DNA of 64,000 nt from the sequence record OK905446.1; one strand, written 5' to 3'. Below, one piece after another: positions 14,928 through 61,448 of this stretch (the stretch's first letter is position 1; each line of letters starts with the position of its first letter). Below the pieces are notes generated by a model that ran no database searches, was not told where the DNA came from, and saw nothing but the letters and a program-made list of their open reading frames with translations. The position numbers were made by a program, and so were the translations under genes.

Positions 14928-15004
14928 AATGTTCTCTCTTAGTTAGTCGATGTCGTTTCGATGTAGCTATAATACGAAAAAAGGGCTGCCGAAGCAACCC
15001 CTTT
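14925..15004 (-). promoter_or_regulatory. Terminator/early-promoter cassette copy 2
   Basis: TTGCTT(14992-14997)-17-TATTAT(14969-14974); leader almost identical to copy 1; hairpin terminates the upstream late operon. Confidence 0.85.
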
Positions 15005-15021
15005 CTTTAAAATAATCGAAA

Positions 15022-15669
15022 TTATTTTGTCCAGACTACAGAAGCACCTGAACCAGATTTCTTGTAACCATACTTTGACAAGTCTGGGATACGTTGAAAA
15101 CTGTCTTTAGCTGTAACCACACCGCGCTCGGAAATTTCTTTCGCGAGTTCTTTAGTGCCACCACCTGCGACAATCTGACCATAAATCTCTGGATATTCTT
15201 GAGCAATGAATTGCATCATTACGTCGTTTTTAGACTTACCAGAAATAACGTTGAAAACTGTCTGTGTGATGTCAGTACCGCGAGTGATGTGGAACACTTT
15301 ACCGCGAGTACGAGATTCAACGTCACGAATGATCTCAGCTTCTACTTCTTCAGGCACAACGTTCAATACGTATGACGTGAATCCAGTATCGAATGTCTCA
15401 CCGTTTGGAATAGTCAAACTCACAGCTTCCCAACCATCTGCCGATGTACCGTTGAATTTGTCGTATGCATACGTTTTGATACCTTCGCCACGTAAGAATT
15501 CAGCGTTACGACCGTATTTGCCAGCGCCGTAATCAAGTGCTGTTCCGCCAGGCGTGAACATGCCTGACTTGAACAACTTAACTAACGCTGCAACTTCTTT
15601 ACCACGAATCGACGTAGCCGCTGAACTGTATTTCTGAACTTCAGATAGAAAATTGCAGAACTTTTTCAT
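15022..15669 (-). CDS. Class I SAM-dependent methyltransferase with capsid-targeting-like N-terminus
   Basis: Motif I ALDYGAGKYG, motif II YAYD, motif IV region FTSYVLNVV; N-terminus MKKFCNFLSE resembles the T4 internal-protein CTS MKTYQEFIAE. Confidence 0.8.
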   Translation of the reverse strand: MKKFCNFLSEVQKYSSAATSIRGKEVAALVKLFKSGMFTPGGTALDYGAGKYGRNAEFLRGEGIKTYAYDKFNGTSADGWEAVSLTIPNGETFDTGFTSYVLNVVPEEVEAEIIRDVESRTRGKVFHITRGTDITQTVFNVISGKSKNDVMMQFIAQEYPEIYGQIVAGGGTKELAKEISERGVVTAKDSFQRIPDLSKYGYKKSGSGASVVWTK

Positions 15670-15678
15670 TTTGTCACC

Positions 15679-17124
15679 TTATTTGATGTCGATGTTAATG
15701 TGGTATTGAGTATCGTTGACTTTGAAATCAATCAAAGTGCCATCAACTGATACGTCTACGCCTTCAGATACGATGCTTTCCATCATAGAGTAAAGCGTTT
15801 CTTGGTCAAGCATTGCTTCCGAGAATGACTGAGCTACTTTAAACGAACTGAACTGGTCATTTGCAAGAGCACGAATTAAGCTGTCAACGTCGTCGACCAT
15901 TTCAGTCACTGGACGTAGGCTTGACATCACTTGAGGGTGGAATACGCGATTTGCCGCTGATTCAGTAACGAATGCAGTAACAGTTTGACGTTCTGGCGTA
16001 ACACAACCGTCGAATTTCATCATTGCTTCAGCAAATGATTTACAATCGAAACGAGTCGCGCCTTTACTTTCCATCATTGCTACCATATCAAGAAGAGGAT
16101 AACCTGCTTCTGATAGCTCAACGCGATATTCTTCACACACGCGATTAGCACGCATAGCGTTACCAGCGTTTGTAAGAACAATGCTCGTGTTGTTGTGCTT
16201 CAGTTTCCAACCGTTGTCGAAATAAGCTTCTTTAACATCAACAAGATTTTGCCATGCAGTTGCTGAAAGCGGGGCACGCGCAATTTCTTTGGTGAATGCG
16301 TTCTGAGCATGTTCAATCATAGTGATTTTTTGCTTCATATCGTACGCTTTGAAGCCTTCAAGCATTGGTAGACCACTGTCTTCAGCTTTAGCACGTGCGT
16401 ATGATACGTCTTTCGCTTCTTTAACAACAAATTGATCCATGACATGACGGTTTAGTGAGCCAAGTGTCATAGCGCGATTCGCTGTCTTGATCTTGATTTC
16501 TTTCATTTCAGAAAGTTGAGCGTCGCTAGACACACTTTCAACAGTAACGTAAACGTCGCCTAGATTGATTGGTGCAGCTTGCGCAAGTACTTCAGACGCT
16601 GTTAGACCGTCAAATGAAAGTGATTCAATGATCAGCTTGTCAGAATCTGCAAGATTGATCTTCATTTCACCCATTGGGATAACAACGTGAATGTCTGATT
16701 TTTTGTAACCTAGCTTAGTTGCTTCAGTCACTACATCGTTCAAATCACCGCCTTTAATCACGATACTAGGAAGACGTGCTTCAGTACACATGATCATTGA
16801 CTTAACTTGCTGTAGAGCATGAGCAGGCATTGCTAAGAATTCGTTTTCCATAAGCAAGTTAATGGTGCTTACGTTCTCACTTAGATTAATGTCGAAGTTT
16901 TTCTCATCAACATTGACATCTTCAGCAAGTTTTGATACCATGATAGATTTAAGCTCATTTGCCTTTTCCATCATGCCGATAGTTGTTTCAACGCCTTTGC
17001 CTTTGCTGAACTCGGTAGAAGCAGTGCCTAGCTCAACAATAACTTGACCAAACTTAGGGTAGATTTTTCCACCCTGAGTTTGACGGCGATTTTCACTCAG
17101 AAATGAGTCAAAGTTACCTAACAT
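15679..17124 (-). CDS. Putative internal head protein, 481 aa
   Basis: N-terminus MLGNFDSFLSE (FxxFLxE, CTS-like); lies in the operon under TATAAATA at 18611. Confidence 0.6.
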   Translation of the reverse strand: MLGNFDSFLSENRRQTQGGKIYPKFGQVIVELGTASTEFSKGKGVETTIGMMEKANELKSIMVSKLAEDVNVDEKNFDINLSENVSTINLLMENEFLAMPAHALQQVKSMIMCTEARLPSIVIKGGDLNDVVTEATKLGYKKSDIHVVIPMGEMKINLADSDKLIIESLSFDGLTASEVLAQAAPINLGDVYVTVESVSSDAQLSEMKEIKIKTANRAMTLGSLNRHVMDQFVVKEAKDVSYARAKAEDSGLPMLEGFKAYDMKQKITMIEHAQNAFTKEIARAPLSATAWQNLVDVKEAYFDNGWKLKHNNTSIVLTNAGNAMRANRVCEEYRVELSEAGYPLLDMVAMMESKGATRFDCKSFAEAMMKFDGCVTPERQTVTAFVTESAANRVFHPQVMSSLRPVTEMVDDVDSLIRALANDQFSSFKVAQSFSEAMLDQETLYSMMESIVSEGVDVSVDGTLIDFKVNDTQYHINIDIK

Positions 17125-17654: not shown

Positions 17655-18551
17655 TTATACTGTTACTGCGTATGTGTAAGACAGTTTAGAACTGTTAGCT
17701 AATGCACCAAGGTTGTCCCAGTCGATTTCTTCAGCGCCTGTTTGACCAGATTCAAGTGGAGGAACAGTCAATGCATATCGTGCAATAACACCATACACAG
17801 GGTGGAATGATTTTGGATCAGTGCCTTTGTACTGATACGCAATCGCACCATCAGTTGCGCGGTCAAATTTGTATGGGCTGAATACTAGACTTGAGATTTC
17901 GTAATCACCGAAGTCTTTCTTAACACCAACAGTAACATAGTCAGAAGTTGCGTATTTGTCGTGAACGATGTATAGACCAGACCATGCTTTATAAACGTCT
18001 GATTCACCGACACGCTGAACAACACCACAGCCAGTCAAGTAACCGAAACAATCACCACCCGCAACGACATATGTGCCTTTACAGCCAGTTGTCTTTTCAA
18101 TTGCTGCCGCAGCTAAATGAACTTGAGCATACAGGTCTTGACCTTTTTCCCAATCATTGTTACCCACAAGAGTGATAGCAGTACCAACGCTTGAAATTGC
18201 GTTCAGTGAGTCGATAATGTCACTATTGATTTCATCAGCGATTTGGTCAGCTAACGAGTCAACAATAACAGTATTGCTAACACCAAGTGCAGCCATATCT
18301 TGAATTGTTTCAAGAGAGATTTCAGTCTTCATTTTTGAAGATTTTACTTCAGCATACCAGCGATCAAGTCTAAACCCGAATTGAGTCCAGCCGCTTCCGT
18401 CGTCAGCTTCAGGTACAGCTTTAAAGCCATAAGCAGTTGCAACGGGCTGGGTTGTTGGCTGTTCAGAAACGATTTCCGTAAATACTAGCGGATATACTCG
18501 TTTTTGGACAGTAACAATGTCTGGTAAACCGTTACTATTCGATACAGTCAT
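17655..18551 (-). CDS. 24: Capsid vertex protein (gp23/gp24 HK97 fold), short form
   Basis: YPLVFTEIVSEQPTTQP, RKMKTEISLETIQD-type motif, DEINSDII, FSPY, GVIARYAL; late promoter upstream. Confidence 0.8.
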   Translation of the reverse strand: MTVSNSNGLPDIVTVQKRVYPLVFTEIVSEQPTTQPVATAYGFKAVPEADDGSGWTQFGFRLDRWYAEVKSSKMKTEISLETIQDMAALGVSNTVIVDSLADQIADEINSDIIDSLNAISSVGTAITLVGNNDWEKGQDLYAQVHLAAAAIEKTTGCKGTYVVAGGDCFGYLTGCGVVQRVGESDVYKAWSGLYIVHDKYATSDYVTVGVKKDFGDYEISSLVFSPYKFDRATDGAIAYQYKGTDPKSFHPVYGVIARYALTVPPLESGQTGAEEIDWDNLGALANSSKLSYTYAVTV

Positions 18552-18609: not shown

Positions 18610-18849
18610 TTATTTATACGTCTGGTTATCAACAAATCGCTTTAATTCAGGCAGGTGACCAATGTATGTATCACCGTGCATGGCAAGCGGTACTCGAATA
18701 TTACGAACACCACCAAGCTTTCTATGCAATTCGTCGATGTCAGATTGAGACTGCAACTCGATTACAGTATACGGGACGTTTTTGAACTTACAGAGGGAGA
18801 TAGCGTGACGACAGCCGTCACAGTTAGGAATTGTGTATATCGTTATCAT
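18610..18849 (-). CDS. Glutaredoxin/NrdH-like protein
   Basis: IYTIPNCDGC (CxxC), VP motif, YIG. Confidence 0.88.
   Translation of the reverse strand: MITIYTIPNCDGCRHAISLCKFKNVPYTVIELQSQSDIDELHRKLGGVRNIRVPLAMHGDTYIGHLPELKRFVDNQTYK
18611..18618 (-). promoter_or_regulatory. Late promoter TATAAATA
   Basis: Exact gp55 consensus 60 bp upstream of gene 24. Confidence 0.85.
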
Positions 18850-22282: not shown

Positions 22283-23164
22283 TTATCTAATATCTTCTAG
22301 TTCATAGCCCCAGATATTACTAAAATCTTCTTCGGATTCGACGTAATACAATGTATCTTGCTCACACAAAATCATATCACCTGCATCAAGCACCGCGCCT
22401 TTTTCCGAAATTTCGAATGTACGACCAGTTTTAGTTTTAACCGTAACATCACCTAGCATTGATAGCCAAATCTCAGCCGAATCTAAGTGGTTGAACTTAC
22501 CACGCGGAGTCGTTGCTTCAATGTGAATAACATCACTTGATTTTCGTTCTATGTAAACTCGACCGTGTGGTAATGCAAATCGAATGTAATCACCGTCGTT
22601 GTCTAGCCAGAATAACTTAGCCCATGTGAATGCATTGGTATTCGGGAAAATGACGTACGTTAGTTCTTCGTCCTTTTTAATACCGTCGTTGTGCAGTCTG
22701 CGAACTTTCGGCGGGTTATTGTTCTTAACCGTGAAGCTATTTCCCATAACGTGAACCGTGTAGTTCATCTTGCTTGCATATCGCTCTGCCATACGCTTGT
22801 ACAGTCGGAAACGTTTGTCTGCATCGTTGCGGTCTTCATCTGAATACGCACTGAACGTAATCTCATCTGGGTGAATTTCAGAGGCTTTTTCAAACGTAGC
22901 AGCTAGGATTGTACTCAATACTGTCATTGCATCTTTAGGCGAACCCTTTGCAAGCGTGTGCGTCCAATTACCAGTTTCGCGGTCTTTTCGTTGGAATGCT
23001 ACATATATGCTTACACCGCGTGGCGTGTCACGGTCTTGAATCGTTGCCATGTATTGCGTACCGCCTACTGTGAAACTAGCTTCATTGTGCATAGCATCCC
23101 ATCTGTATGGAACAGGTCGGTCGAACGCTTCAATTAACGTTTCGTCGTGTTCAAAAATAATCAT
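22283..23164 (-). CDS. Late-expressed hypothetical protein, putative internal head protein
   Basis: N-terminus ...TLIE/AFD resembles the gp21 cleavage site of Alt (LITE/LFD); TATAAATA upstream. Confidence 0.65.
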   Translation of the reverse strand: MIIFEHDETLIEAFDRPVPYRWDAMHNEASFTVGGTQYMATIQDRDTPRGVSIYVAFQRKDRETGNWTHTLAKGSPKDAMTVLSTILAATFEKASEIHPDEITFSAYSDEDRNDADKRFRLYKRMAERYASKMNYTVHVMGNSFTVKNNNPPKVRRLHNDGIKKDEELTYVIFPNTNAFTWAKLFWLDNDGDYIRFALPHGRVYIERKSSDVIHIEATTPRGKFNHLDSAEIWLSMLGDVTVKTKTGRTFEISEKGAVLDAGDMILCEQDTLYYVESEEDFSNIWGYELEDIR

Positions 23165-23186: not shown

Positions 23187-23194
23187 TATTTATA
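23187..23194 (-). promoter_or_regulatory. Late promoter TATAAATA
   Basis: Exact consensus between the ligase terminator (23197-23220) and the 293-aa gene. Confidence 0.85.
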
Positions 23195-36675: not shown

Positions 36676-36861
36676 TTAATTACTCCACACGGGAGTACAT
36701 TGCATTAACTGACCGTCAATCTCGTATTGAACGGCTTGCGGTTCAGTCGTATATGTTGTAGTTTGACCGACGCCCAATGCACCTGCACCAATCGTCGCTA
36801 GTATACCCAAAATGACAATCACGACTATCAATTCGATTAGAGTAAATCCTTTAGATTTCAT
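36676..36861 (-). CDS. Type IV prepilin-like mini-protein
   Basis: MKSKG|FTLIELIVVIVILGILA: basic leader, G|F cleavage site, E+5, hydrophobic helix. Confidence 0.85.
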   Translation of the reverse strand: MKSKGFTLIELIVVIVILGILATIGAGALGVGQTTTYTTEPQAVQYEIDGQLMQCTPVWSN

Positions 36862-58000: not shown

Positions 58001-58761
58001 CGCCGCGTTTAACACTGATTGAAACAGATCAATCTAATAAAGAATGGAATGTTCTTGTCAGCCTTTCAGGATTGAGCATTCGAGAAGACGGATCAGCAAC
58101 TGTTCGCCAATTGTTTGCTGCGAACGGTGATACTTCGTTTCAAAATGGTTCGGGTATTGTTCGAGTGAATGACGGTGCTTCGGCAACTGATGCTTCTCGA
58201 CTATTCGTTACTGGTGCGGTTACTGAGACTCAAAGCACTGCAAACGTCGATGGTACATACGCGACTTACAGCAGCCCAGCAGCAGGAACACTACGTCAGA
58301 AGTACTTGGGTATTAATAACGTAGCTAAAGCGGCTGAGAAGTGGGTTACAGCGCGTACAGTGACACTAACTGGCGACTTGACTGGTAACTTCACAATTGA
58401 CGGAAGCGGAAACGTTTCAACAAACGTGCAAGTTAATGACAATAGCCACAATCACTCTGGTGAGAACATCACTAGCGGTACAATTGCAAACGCTCGACTA
58501 ATCAAGTCAAGTCGTACAAGTCAAGGTATCGTTCAAGTAACAAGTGACGTTCGTACAGCCGATCCGGTGAATGCGTCAGACCCACACCAAGCTCTATCGG
58601 CAGGTGCAGGTAAGACGCTTTCTGAGCGTATCGACTTGTTCACGCCAGACGGCGGTACAGGCGACAGTGTTAAATACAGAGACTATATTCAAGTTGGCTC
58701 TGTAAGAATGTCAACAAACAATCAAGGCGTGCTGGAGTTCACTTTCGGTCACGCGATATAA
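55021..58761 (+). CDS. 34: Long tail fibre proximal subunit
   Basis: Start MSEFRRAFRASGLDA; repeated ATETRRG.AEIATQ.E motifs; divergent from rnh as in T4. Confidence 0.95.
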   Translation: MSEFRRAFRASGLDASNQNVINVANPRTDELFDGINQGYFIDENTVQEYDSTRAHYKVDFIVEFNQRLYKNIIEVNAPEAFDPQKWKKMRNDPEWEDTDSSVGANVGDFLLLTASSAITVTLPASPLTGDTVTIKDGRGVISTYPCSIVAAGGKTIQHYGINGGVQSDTSISFNRPSSTIYLVYNGIAWTYQINQQPYHTYLDDSHASQQGAYLTTGGYFTNAGETVTFDGSVKKIAISLPLNPNVGDTIHLKDVAYLENQTTIQIGVRTVSTGQIVQDPFSGVRSNTISLDTIGAADITFIDDNGTGVWIITLANNPHLWNYVGESSSVTLKPRTRYAIEIADAVPSMTITLPEKPVDGDWIEISHNKTAHKTVTVQVHPNFGDNDPGHGVDEYKVFLDFETYRYQKYRHYVDFVPFFVESFEISDYDSGYSFVLYYDGTRKVWSFGNIATRIDVADELHRKRPGIVPLADPTEALAHGIEYAHPEDAAQPWADQSPLKDHVITVETLDARRAAEDQVGIARIATLDTDEALEESRSGTLVRYPDSAFRHDIIITPRSLNARTATETRRGVVEIATQTETRSTTNDVQVLTPKKFHAAQAEENLTGVAELVKASNNINANGTLGSTANMRSDRTVNGLVDTVYDINDHVRIVTPKMLNEYRATENQPGTLWVAKSSELRVNDSTVDDAIITPKKLAAWKASATIRGIARSATQTEANAITGSGESWTTVFITPETLHNRSATETRRGVAEIATQAEVDAGSLDTHIVSPLKLQTWLAYDHFTSDGVLQGAGYGVSGISHTGDIWNGINLEIALATETQRGTLEVATQSEANAQLVPSDTKIITPAKLNARRATESLAGIAELATTGEIDTGTDDVTIVTPAKLLHWTRNSTNSRATESQWGTVHNATIAETFVGNDTVGSTQPYTSYLRNTYAVTPYGLHYALRNYLPLHAKADDSELLDGIDSTQFARSDESDVIDGVYTFTQNDLIVRGESPRLTLIETDQSNKEWNVLVSLSGLSIREDGSATVRQLFAANGDTSFQNGSGIVRVNDGASATDASRLFVTGAVTETQSTANVDGTYATYSSPAAGTLRQKYLGINNVAKAAEKWVTARTVTLTGDLTGNFTIDGSGNVSTNVQVNDNSHNHSGENITSGTIANARLIKSSRTSQGIVQVTSDVRTADPVNASDPHQALSAGAGKTLSERIDLFTPDGGTGDSVKYRDYIQVGSVRMSTNNQGVLEFTFGHAI

Positions 58762-58769
58762 GGTGACTT

Positions 58770-61448
58770 ATGTACGAAAGACTTAAACGTGATGGCGATT
58801 GGCTTCTTGTCTTTCGCCACGACTCTACGGGAGGTGTTTATTTCACCTCCAACGCTGAGGCTAGAAGTGTCGGGTCAGATCCCGACATTGAAGCTAAATT
58901 CAGTGCATTAAATGGGCTTGAGGAATTTCGCCGTGAAGACGGCAAATTCCAATTCAAGCTACACTACCCTGAACTCGGTGTAACTAACATTTGGAAGCAG
59001 AGTAACAACTTTGCAGCAAGCAGCGTTGGTCAATTTCTAACAAACGGTAACTTAGCAGGCGGCGTATCTGTAACTGAGCAGACATCGACAACAGGCACGT
59101 GGAATATCATCGAGAAATCGAATCCCGGGTCGTCGAAGTATACAATAGAACAGCCAACGCCTGCAATAAACAATCAGCTAAGATTTGATATACCTCAAAC
59201 ACGTTTACTTCCAAACAGAACATATACACTGTCTTGTTGGGTGGGATATGAAAACGAATCAGACCATGATACCGCGGCGATTTTCCATGCGCAATGGTTC
59301 AATGCGTCAGGTACAGCGTCTTCACTAAGCCCGACTCCCGGTGATGTTTTCGAAGCAGCGGGAAATGAAGTAACAATTGACGGCATCGTGTGGAAACGAC
59401 ACTATGCTAGAATCACAACACCATCGTCTCTAAACACGTCAAATATGTCGTGGTTTGTCGGCTATACGAACACAAGTGGTCAAGTTCCGTCTGGAAAACG
59501 TTGGATTACCAACTTTATGGTGTCAGATGCACCATTGATCAAAAACTACACGGGCGATTATGATGCGTATGCAGGGGGGGTTCGTGGATATGAAGCAATC
59601 TCGATTCAGTCTACAGCTAGTAGCTGGGGTGGCTTAGAGTTCAATACGGGACCTCAGTCACTTGCAGATGGTTCGGTTAATAGCACATCGTGGTGGTATG
59701 CAATTGGTCAACAAGAAGCATATACTGGAAATACAACGCCAGGTCCCGGTCAAACAGTAAACATTACTGAACTGTGGATTTATGCACCAGTTGGCTCGAT
59801 GATAGGCGAGTATGAGCTTGCAACGCGACATCTAAGAGAGTTTTCAAACAACAATTTTAGACTAGTAGCAACAGGTGTAGCAAACGGAAGCTCAAATCTA
59901 GCATCATGCTATTTGAATGACGTTAGCGTATTCACACCAGAAGCAAGAGCAACTTCACAAATCAGAATCATCATTTTTAATGATAACATGACAGTGAAGA
60001 CAAACAGCAAATATCTGCTAAACAACTCGACGCAGAGAAGTAACTTTATCAATGCGCTGAATAACTTGACAAATGAGATATTCCTTATCATATCGAACGG
60101 GTCAATGTATGCAGATACTGCGGTAGATACTGCAATCAATCAATACAGACCAGTTGAGTATCGAGGTGCTTCGTATTTCGGAAATTATCCGTATAGCTAC
60201 GCTGCATTTGGTCGCGCTGATCTGGGAATTGTATATGATCGTTGTATTCACATCGCTGAGGGTGATAGCATTGTAGATACTGCATTCGAAGACAAAGATG
60301 GAATCGGTTCAGCGGGTTACGGCAACGCTTTATTAGCGCGTGATCTTGTGCCAGTCGATCAACGCCAGAACATTGCTGATTTCGGAATAGTCGAGGGTCA
60401 AAATTTGATTTACAAAGTCAGAGCTTGTATTGACCGAACAACTGCAATCGGTAACGGAACTAAATCTTGCAACTTGAGATTCTACAACGCTATCAATGCT
60501 GAAATAGGTCGTCAGAATGCTATATTTGGTTCGTCTGAAATGTTCGAAACTCAAGAGTACTTTGTACCTGTACCAGCAGGCGCAGTTACATTTGGTGTAT
60601 GGTCTGACTTAGATCAAGAGTATTTTGACTATGCTCTATTGTTCAAAGGCGGATTTTCTGCGCCAGACGGCGTGCCTCATATGATCTCGAACATCAATGG
60701 TATGGCTGCTCAAGACGTAATCAACTCGCCAATCTCAGGAAATGCAGTTGATAACACAAGTTGGCTTAATGCATACAATTCAGATTCGAATCTGTATGAC
60801 GGTGTTACAATGCCTGTTCTAGAAAGTGACAACGTTCATTGGGGTAACTATGTTTTATCAAATGGCGAAAAAGTTTTCACTCGTTCAACTGGCGCAACTT
60901 CTTGGATTGAATTGGATGAAGTTGACATTGATCCGTCTAGACCATACTTTGCTTCAATGTGGGTTAACTCAATTGACAAAGATAACGGTTCACTGACATT
61001 CGGCTGTGAGGTAAAAACTGCACTTGACTCGACAACTTCTCTAGTCAAGAGTGATGGAACTGATGCTGTATTGTTTCCGACTACTCAAGTCGTAGACAAC
61101 TTCCCGGCTGACAACGGAAAATGGATTCTTCTTCAGACGTTCATACTACCACATGATTGGACTGATGAACAACACCAAGAATTCGAAGATAAGTTCGAGA
61201 ACTACTTCGGTGTTCACAACCCTGAAGATGATACTACGTTGAAAACAGCGAAAGGCATCGGTTATTACACTACAGCTACTAGCGTACTAAGATGGAAATC
61301 AGATCATGCTAAGTTTAATCTGAGATTCAGAGATACAGCGTCAATAACTGAAAGTCAAACAATGTGGGCATTGCCTATCGTGTCTGAAGTTAAAGTTGCT
61401 TGTTTCTATGAGAACACGTTAACAGCCATTGACTATTCAATGAAATAA
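58770..61448 (+). CDS. 35: Tail fibre hinge/knee protein, extended (892 aa) with fibrinogen-like and lectin-like domains
   Basis: Follows gene 34; WLLVFRHD...WKQS / WGGL...WWYAIG fibrinogen-like motifs; ILEI-like segment. Confidence 0.75.
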   Translation: MYERLKRDGDWLLVFRHDSTGGVYFTSNAEARSVGSDPDIEAKFSALNGLEEFRREDGKFQFKLHYPELGVTNIWKQSNNFAASSVGQFLTNGNLAGGVSVTEQTSTTGTWNIIEKSNPGSSKYTIEQPTPAINNQLRFDIPQTRLLPNRTYTLSCWVGYENESDHDTAAIFHAQWFNASGTASSLSPTPGDVFEAAGNEVTIDGIVWKRHYARITTPSSLNTSNMSWFVGYTNTSGQVPSGKRWITNFMVSDAPLIKNYTGDYDAYAGGVRGYEAISIQSTASSWGGLEFNTGPQSLADGSVNSTSWWYAIGQQEAYTGNTTPGPGQTVNITELWIYAPVGSMIGEYELATRHLREFSNNNFRLVATGVANGSSNLASCYLNDVSVFTPEARATSQIRIIIFNDNMTVKTNSKYLLNNSTQRSNFINALNNLTNEIFLIISNGSMYADTAVDTAINQYRPVEYRGASYFGNYPYSYAAFGRADLGIVYDRCIHIAEGDSIVDTAFEDKDGIGSAGYGNALLARDLVPVDQRQNIADFGIVEGQNLIYKVRACIDRTTAIGNGTKSCNLRFYNAINAEIGRQNAIFGSSEMFETQEYFVPVPAGAVTFGVWSDLDQEYFDYALLFKGGFSAPDGVPHMISNINGMAAQDVINSPISGNAVDNTSWLNAYNSDSNLYDGVTMPVLESDNVHWGNYVLSNGEKVFTRSTGATSWIELDEVDIDPSRPYFASMWVNSIDKDNGSLTFGCEVKTALDSTTSLVKSDGTDAVLFPTTQVVDNFPADNGKWILLQTFILPHDWTDEQHQEFEDKFENYFGVHNPEDDTTLKTAKGIGYYTTATSVLRWKSDHAKFNLRFRDTASITESQTMWALPIVSEVKVACFYENTLTAIDYSMK

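Follow-up and report, generated by a model that had tools for sequence, protein, structure and literature searches.

Results and Discussion

The locus and its transcription

The window analysed here, a stretch of 64,000 nucleotides (nt), is identical to positions 1-64000 of the Vibrio phage VS1 record (OK905446.1), which belongs to a KVP40-like phage of the genus Schizotequatrovirus. On its minus strand, at 15022..15669, lies an open reading frame (ORF) of 215 amino acids (aa) with an ATG start and a Shine-Dalgarno-like GGTGA ahead of it. It is the ortholog of KVP40.0066, and in nearly all records it is labelled 'hypothetical protein'. A preliminary description had read this ORF as a candidate methyltransferase dependent on S-adenosylmethionine (SAM), packaged in the virion and injected with the DNA. 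The ORF is real, and the four motifs pointed out in that description, MKKFCNFLSE (aa 1-10), LDYGAGKYG (45-53), YAYD (67-70) and FTSYVLNVV (97-105), were all found in its translation.

The minus-strand genes of this region follow the order nrdH, 24, 55, a 481-aa ORF, the methyltransferase gene, two small ORFs, an a-gt.4 homolog, 30.3, an NT5C-like gene and 47 (Table 1). The relative order is the same in the T4 record, with nrdH, 55.x, 55, a-gt.5 to a-gt, 47.1 and 47, in agreement with the earlier remark that the gene occupies the interval between genes 47 and 55 where T4 carries a-gt, the alpha-glucosyltransferase gene. The likeness between the methyltransferase and T4 a-gt is only positional. 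Gene 24 adjoins gene 55 and is far from the gene 20-23 head cluster; its product, with 298 aa, is short for a gp23-family protein, and a possible internal deletion is remarked on in the KVP40 annotation.

As had been described, the methyltransferase gene is the last of a run downstream of an exact T4-type late promoter box, TATAAATA, and is followed by a terminator. The box is the single exact copy on the minus strand nearby, and no variant with one mismatch was found between it and the methyltransferase ORF. Exact sites in the 64 kb number 3 against 1.9 expected, with no excess over chance. In KVP40, about 10 of the 13 exact boxes are located 24-60 nt before start codons, including those of genes 22, 23, 18, 25, wac and 24, the last at the same place as in VS1. 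Because the KVP40 boxes cluster before the starts of known late genes, the box ahead of gene 24 is a credible late promoter. The intergenic gaps among genes 24 and 55, the 481-aa ORF and the methyltransferase gene are of 8-9 nt, with a ribosome-binding site for each gene, and no terminator was seen between the gene 24 box and the methyltransferase gene. The hairpin after the run has a folding energy of -18.1 kcal/mol (z = -3.5), and none of 200 shuffled sequences was as stable. From this arrangement we infer a transcript that starts at the gene 24 promoter, passes through the methyltransferase gene and ends at the hairpin.

Table 1. Coordinates of the features discussed in the text. Positions refer to the VS1 window unless KVP40 or a contig (L numbers) is named.
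Feature	Position	Strand	Evidence or remark
Late promoter box TATAAATA, exact T4-type	18611..18618	-	60 nt upstream of gene 24; overlaps last nrdH codons
Gene 24, head vertex protein, 298 aa, first gene of the run	17655..18551	-	Pfam Gp23 4e-48; PHROG major head protein; KVP40 annotation gp24
Gene 55, late sigma factor, 170 aa	17134..17646	-	phrog_234 7e-58; 46% identity to T4 gp55
481-aa ORF (KVP40.0065 ortholog)	15679..17124	-	Invariably immediately upstream of the methyltransferase gene
Candidate capsid-targeting propeptide MKKFCNFLSE, codons 1-10, predicted cut after E10	15640..15669	-	Likeness to T4 leaders, pattern statistics, ortholog conservation, pLDDT 44
Predicted mature methyltransferase body, codons 11-215 and stop, 205 aa, 22.3 kDa, pI 8.6	15022..15639	-	
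Motif I LDYGAGKYG, aa 45-53, SAM-binding glycine loop	15511..15537	-	D46, G48 and G50 invariant in 85 relatives; aligns with TehB motif I
D70, acidic residue ending strand 2 (YAYD, aa 67-70)	15460..15462	-	Invariant
FTSYVLNVV, aa 97-105, strand 4 and next turn, motif IV place	15355..15381	-	N103 and V104 invariant; not DPPY/NPPY/PC
Intrinsic terminator hairpin, UUCG loop, A-run before, U-run after	14977..15006	-	16 nt past the methyltransferase stop codon
Partner domain, L044	7425-8588		
Partner domain, L074	4933-5433		
Partner domain, L075	1424-1930		
Partner domain, L082	14-469		
Partner domain, L106	730-1212		
Partner domain, KVP40	231409-232371		Outside the window
KVP40.0290	KVP40 156073-157191; L005 6073-7191		Outside the window
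KVP40.0097	KVP40 58233-59687; L003 8233-9687		Outside the window
293-aa ORF (KVP40.0058 ortholog)	22283-23164	-	phrog_6387; weak DUF6934
Exact TATAAATA ahead of the 293-aa ORF	23187-23194	-	23 nt upstream
61-aa ORF	36676-36861	-	

A class I methyltransferase fold

Relatives of the protein were collected as 231 sequences (E<=1e-3) from a 90%-identity collection and as 133 clusters (E<=1e-30) from a 50%-identity collection, and 85 relatives were aligned. Pfam family PF13489 (Methyltransf_23) was matched by 75 of these 85, with a best E value of 7.4e-8. The query itself had no match in NCBIfam or PADLOC and falls in an unnamed family of the PHROGs; a sequence search of the PDB with it gave nothing useful, and the profile search gave only sub-threshold matches over motif I, to TehB and flavivirus NS5. 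The alignment has 14 invariant columns, among them D46, G48 and G50 in motif I and D70, which closes the predicted strand 65-69. In class I enzymes the acidic residue that ends strand 2 binds the ribose of SAM. A further conserved set is specific to the family, T19-S20-I21, R54, H127, R130 and Q192-R193, and its arginines and histidine suggest an anionic ligand.

The preliminary description had named structure prediction and search as a check, and both agree with the class I core that it had recognised. AlphaFold2 on the family alignment produced a confident model (predicted local distance difference test, pLDDT, 90.2), for which Foldseek returned 265 matches in the PDB at E<=1e-3; the 50 listed are all entries with the class I SAM-methyltransferase fold. 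The best template modelling (TM) score among the matches listed is 0.59, for METTL6, and TehB, DhpI, ChlM, CysG/BelI and plant O- and N-methyltransferases are also present. A search of a viral structure library gave the same picture of the fold. Features in common with the Methyltransf_23/11, TehB-type and METTL6 enzymes are a fold of Rossmann-like type, motif I and an acidic residue that follows strand 2, whereas identity is only ~10-20%, TM scores are 0.4-0.6, and the VS1 family has its own invariant set and is restricted to phages. On the alignment and the model we conclude that the protein is a class I SAM methyltransferase of active-looking type, whose predicted activity would be on a small molecule, RNA or protein.

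It could be proposed, on the other hand, that the enzyme is a DNA methyltransferase, packaged or not, which guards phage DNA from restriction and is a functional stand-in for the T4 DNA-modifying enzyme at this map place. The interval is indeed syntenic with T4 a-gt, and methylated dPreQ1 is found in phages of the genus (PMC10516641). Moreover, 42 of the 85 relatives weakly match the N-terminus of TIGR04096 (the first ~70 positions, that is motif I and the part before it; best 6.6e-8), the closest named sequence family, a putative methyltransferase associated with DNA phosphorothioation genes. However, these matches score ~27 bits against a cut-off of 150 bits and cover positions 14-83 of 478, the query itself is unmatched, and TIGR04096 is a cellular family that is itself uncharacterised. 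Neither PP[YFW] nor a PC dipeptide is present in the 215-aa translation, where the motif IV place reads LNVVP, so that the absence of DPPY/NPPY and PC motifs stated in the preliminary description stands. The model has a single domain of 205 residues and no DNA target-recognition domain, and the 50 best-listed fold matches include no DNA methylase, being small-molecule, RNA or protein methyltransferases. It must also be taken into account that KVP40 already carries a separate annotated DNA methyltransferase, KVP40.0137, and that experiments assigned the formation of methylated dPreQ1 in this genus to the DUF3109 protein DpdM (PMC10516641). A DNA base is an unlikely substrate, and we regard the reading as a whole as very improbable.

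Two narrower roles were considered and rejected. Synthesis of methyl-dPreQ1 by this enzyme was rejected because that step is assigned to DpdM, which is a cysteine-rich metal-binding protein (DUF3109/YkgJ-like), whereas the protein studied here has a Rossmann fold; its single cysteine lies inside the leader. A Hen1-like role in RNA repair, considered since some relatives are near pseT, rnlB and rnh, is unsupported, as no Hen1 structure is among the fold matches listed.

An N-terminal leader of the T4 capsid-targeting type

The propeptides of T4 head proteins have 10-19 residues, and the protease gp21 cuts them after L/I-x-E, as the preliminary description had said; mutagenesis of internal protein (IP) IPIII indicated that residues 4 and 7 matter for targeting and residues 8 and 10 for processing (PMC9026906). 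In the T4 record AF158101.6, from which the leaders were taken, IPII and IPIII start with MKTYQEFIAE followed by A, and IPI starts with MKTFKEF. The VS1 methyltransferase starts with MKKFCNFLSE and its KVP40 copy with MKQFCNFLAE, both followed by V. The resemblance to MKTYQEFIAE that had been noticed was borne out by comparison with this record: the VS1 leader is like that of IPII and IPIII at positions 1, 2, 4, 7, 8 and 10, and the candidate targeting residues F4 and F7 correspond to Y4 and F7 in IPII/IPIII and to F4 and F7 in IPI. L8-S9-E10 is the predicted cleavage motif of gp21 type, in which L and E are invariant and the middle residue is free among nine orthologs.

The pattern ^MK.[YF]..F[IL].E was fixed beforehand from the T4 record and the published review. 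It matched a single one of 385 KVP40 ORFs, that of the methyltransferase, and was absent from 60,431 internal windows and from 813 ORFs flanking the relatives. Among the methyltransferase family it was present in 7 of 120 members, three of which (P0044, P0055 and P0075) have an enzyme body with an identity of only about 40%. A bare [LI].E near the N-terminus, present in 8-16% of ORFs, was dropped as evidence, and a 'strict' pattern derived from the matches themselves was discarded as post hoc.

Conservation within the leader is in line with this resemblance. In the nine orthologs, which are 65-95% identical overall, positions 2, 4, 7, 8 and 10 are conserved as K, F/L, F/Y, L and E, while positions 3, 5, 6 and 9 show 5, 6, 4 and 6 different residues, a variability reached by only 12% of the columns of the body. 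The free and fixed positions of the leader therefore reproduce the mutational map of T4. In the model, residues 1-20 have pLDDT values of 44-50 and lie outside the predicted fold. The genes for gp21, gp22, gp67 and gp68 are all annotated in KVP40, the VS1 copies being beyond the window, and KVP40 has no annotated internal proteins.

The leader as a portable module

The distance between the leader and the conserved GGTSI.G segment varies by tens of residues among the relatives, some of which are leaderless and begin right at this segment. In P0133, P0135 and P0136 a whole domain is inserted between the methyltransferase and the leader, which keeps its place at the very N-terminus; in P0135 this domain is a GNAT acetyltransferase. 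Judging from the alignments and the model, the leader is a module separable from the fold. As to other architectures, P0134/P0138 have an N-terminal DUF5661 ahead of the methyltransferase, and in P0157 the methyltransferase is the N-terminal part of a protein of 1110 aa with a DUF5710 match.

Among 50,697 phage records the methyltransferase occurs in 49 Vibrio phages only, which are all the records of Schizotequatrovirus type, and no relative was found in 185,579 bacterial and archaeal genomes scanned. As far as seen in these searches, the family is phage-only. The loci of the relatives come from viral and metagenome contigs, and most of those with a recognisable marker are T4-like. In six lineages structural modules contain or adjoin the methyltransferase gene, which lies before gp20-gp21-gp23 (L017), next to gp23/gp21 (L021, L023), after gp18 and gp4 (L019), between gp4 and gp17 (L049) and near gp18 (L024; L025/L091). 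The remaining relatives are near rnh, gp43/gp41, nrdA, pseT, rIIA or cd, and all-against-all clustering of the ORFs around the relatives found no universal neighbour.

In at least six loci, an ORF of ~165 aa akin to the N-terminal half of KVP40.0371 lies on the same strand, 44-309 nt from the methyltransferase gene (Table 1). One of the contigs (L044) has this partner domain fused to the front end of the methyltransferase, and the same domain motif begins P0136 and P0150. The partner domain has the motifs GVGK..GG..Y.H, HHKW and GFD and more than 600 relatives, and no relative of it was found in Pfam or the PDB. Leaders of the same kinds are present in 61 of 120 members of the partner family, against a base rate of 16%, one example being MKTFKEVISE, and other members are leaderless. 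The methyltransferase and partner families are unrelated, yet they share an optional portable leader, as do the internal proteins of T4, and this sharing suggests that the two proteins work together.

Weighing packaging against a cytoplasmic role

According to these data we tentatively favour, with close to even confidence, the reading in which the protein is a phage-specific class I SAM methyltransferase made as a precursor with a ten-residue capsid-targeting propeptide of T4 type, packaged, processed and delivered with the DNA. Several findings weigh against it. Since gene 55 is needed before late transcription, the run is probably also read early or in the middle period from upstream promoters; late expression of the methyltransferase run is supported, and 'late only' is not established. 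Many relatives are surrounded by genes of replication or early type and have no TATAAATA upstream; none was found within 110 nt upstream of the distant relatives. Bare L/I-x-E is common, occurring at positions 8-12 in 31 of 385 KVP40 ORFs and at positions 5-13 in 16% of ORFs, and a loose hydrophobic pattern, also set a priori, gave 4 matches with about 2 expected (P=0.14). The full T4-type leader is present in two lineages only, most of the distant relatives have a shorter leader, M-K-L-x-D-I/L-F-E, with a spacing unlike that of T4, and some relatives within head clusters are without L/I-x-E. Leaders are found in 64% of the 231-relative set and in 32% of the 50%-identity representatives, counts that include related sequences; because family members share descent, the P-values for enrichment are too small. 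The query itself matches no Pfam family at E<=0.1, and no virion proteome or transcriptome of KVP40-like phages was found in the literature searched.

An ordinary cytoplasmic methyltransferase, whose substrate in the infected cell would be RNA, a metabolite or a protein, would be in keeping with several of these points. Its N-terminal amphipathic helix would then form a lid or serve in oligomerisation or in binding a partner, and the likeness to T4 would be convergent; it is common for a short N-terminal helix to end in hydrophobic-x-E. A gene co-transcribed with gene 55 would be expressed before the late period, and the many relatives among rnh, gp43/gp41, nrdA, pseT and rIIA are without a late box upstream. 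However, convergence would have to explain why the T4 pattern defined a priori is unique in the KVP40 proteome and why the free and fixed leader positions follow the T4 mutational map. Moreover, the leader is dispensable for the fold, is split off by inserted domains and is common to an unrelated family. We consider a purely cytoplasmic role a serious possibility, although on the improbable side.

Proposed mechanism

If the tagged methyltransferase is indeed packaged, the following steps can be envisaged. The late promoter ahead of gene 24 would drive one transcript covering genes 24 and 55, the 481-aa ORF and the methyltransferase gene and stopping at the hairpin. By analogy with the T4 tag, the propeptide, with K2, F4 and F7, would direct the protein to the prohead's scaffolding core, where a prohead protease of gp21 type could cut after L8-S9-E10 and leave within the head a mildly basic 22-kDa enzyme beginning at V11. 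This enzyme would exit with the DNA at infection and methylate its target before phage gene expression. Going by the model, the enzyme most likely does not act on a DNA base, as the fold is of the small-molecule, RNA or protein type, there is no target-recognition domain and the conserved pocket is rich in arginine and histidine.

The tag could also bring the protein into the head without making it an injected effector. The enzyme might work in the assembling head, where it would methylate a component of the head or core, or the DNA that enters during packaging, or it might be lost after cleavage like the scaffold fragments. The same tag evidence applies here, most cleaved core fragments of T4 leave the head (PMC9026906), and the gene is linked to gene 24 in VS1 and to gp20/gp21/gp23 elsewhere. 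On the other side, the protein is a globular, mildly basic enzyme of the size of IPIII, and those T4 proteins that receive a single N-terminal cut, the IPs and Alt, remain in the head and are ejected (PMC9026906). A supply of SAM within the sealed head also seems unlikely, and we think that a role confined to the head is rather improbable.

Comparison with known systems

The preferred reading, a packaged and injected methyltransferase, has its nearest models in T4. IPI, IPII and IPIII have a ten-residue leader with M-K at positions 1-2, an aromatic residue at 4, F at 7, I/L at 8, E at 10 and a small residue at 11, all of which is alike in VS1. As in VS1, they are unrelated cargo proteins sharing a tag, and their genes are outside the head cluster, in variable regions. 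In size and charge IPIII (21.7 kDa, isoelectric point, pI, 9.5) resembles the predicted mature methyltransferase (22.3 kDa, pI 8.6). In contrast, the T4 proteins are small basic DNA-associated proteins or a nuclease inhibitor, encoded by polymorphic genes, whereas the VS1 cargo has a conserved enzyme fold and is encoded by a core gene of its genus, and its packaging and cleavage are predicted.

Alt of T4 is an ADP-ribosyltransferase whose N-terminal propeptide is removed by gp21 and which is delivered with the DNA and modifies its host target before phage expression (PMC9026906). The methyltransferase is like it in being an enzyme with a (candidate) N-terminal propeptide, and unlike it in its chemistry, methyl transfer instead of ADP-ribosylation, in being one third of the size of Alt and in having no sequence relation to it. 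Phage P1 carries in its virion DarB, a methyltransferase-helicase of very large size that shields incoming DNA against type I restriction. DarB is a precedent for a protein with a methyltransferase domain being carried in the head and delivered at infection. The comparison is by description only: DarB is ~ten times larger, multi-domain, from an unrelated phage and packaged by another route. To our knowledge, the T4 capsid-targeting tag is the classic route of protein delivery, and its known natural cargo consists of a handful of small proteins and one ADP-ribosyltransferase. No small natural methyltransferase with such a tag turned up in the literature or databases searched.

If the methyltransferase family does wear the tag, the known chemistry of injected phage proteins would be widened, and this would be the first candidate head cargo for KVP40-like phages, encoded by a core gene in a genus of Vibrio phages with broad host range. 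The tag can be read as a rule, with fixed positions 2, 4, 7, 8 and 10, that could be used to mine T4-like genomes and metagenomes, and it already picks out the partner family. A more far-reaching proposal, which we hold to be somewhat unlikely, is that the heads of KVP40-like phages and of many uncultured T4-like phages are loaded with tag-bearing enzymes instead of small internal proteins of T4 style, the methyltransferase being an injected effector that inactivates or marks a host molecule within seconds. If this were true, the set of enzymes would hold the methyltransferase, the ~165-aa partner-domain protein, an ADP-ribosyltransferase-like protein and others, and methylation would be a new class of counter-defence preceding phage expression, with a defence signal, RNA or protein as candidate targets.

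Other proteins with leader-like N-termini

The 481-aa ORF begins with MLGNFDSFLSEN, where F..FL.E is one residue out of register with respect to the leader of the methyltransferase. It has 12 homolog clusters only, all from Schizotequatrovirus-like phages. Its AlphaFold model (pLDDT 68, with residues 1-22 below 50) consists of two domains and a disordered linker, and neither a PDB fold match at E<=1e-3 nor a match in Pfam, NCBIfam or PADLOC was obtained.

KVP40.0290 starts with MKNLKSFMEE and has a PARP-catalytic match with E = 1.3e-4, below threshold; no sequence relative of it was found in the PDB. It is perhaps an analogue of Alt, and likelier so than the methyltransferase. KVP40.0097 starts with MKLFTEFYQE and has a HEAT-repeat match. 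Both are possible further head cargo, and the leader likeness of these two proteins and of the 481-aa ORF gives hints only.

The 293-aa ORF has an exact TATAAATA upstream (Table 1). Its N-terminus ends in L-I-E followed by AFDRP, and that of its KVP40 ortholog in L-C-E followed by AFDRP, the preceding residues being different; it looks like another late protein processed at the N-terminus. The domain of this ORF is also present in KVP40.0115 and in KVP40.0371, there in the C-terminal half. Finally, the 61-aa ORF starts with MKSKGFTLIEL followed by a hydrophobic stretch, and so resembles the leader of a type IV prepilin or pseudopilin.

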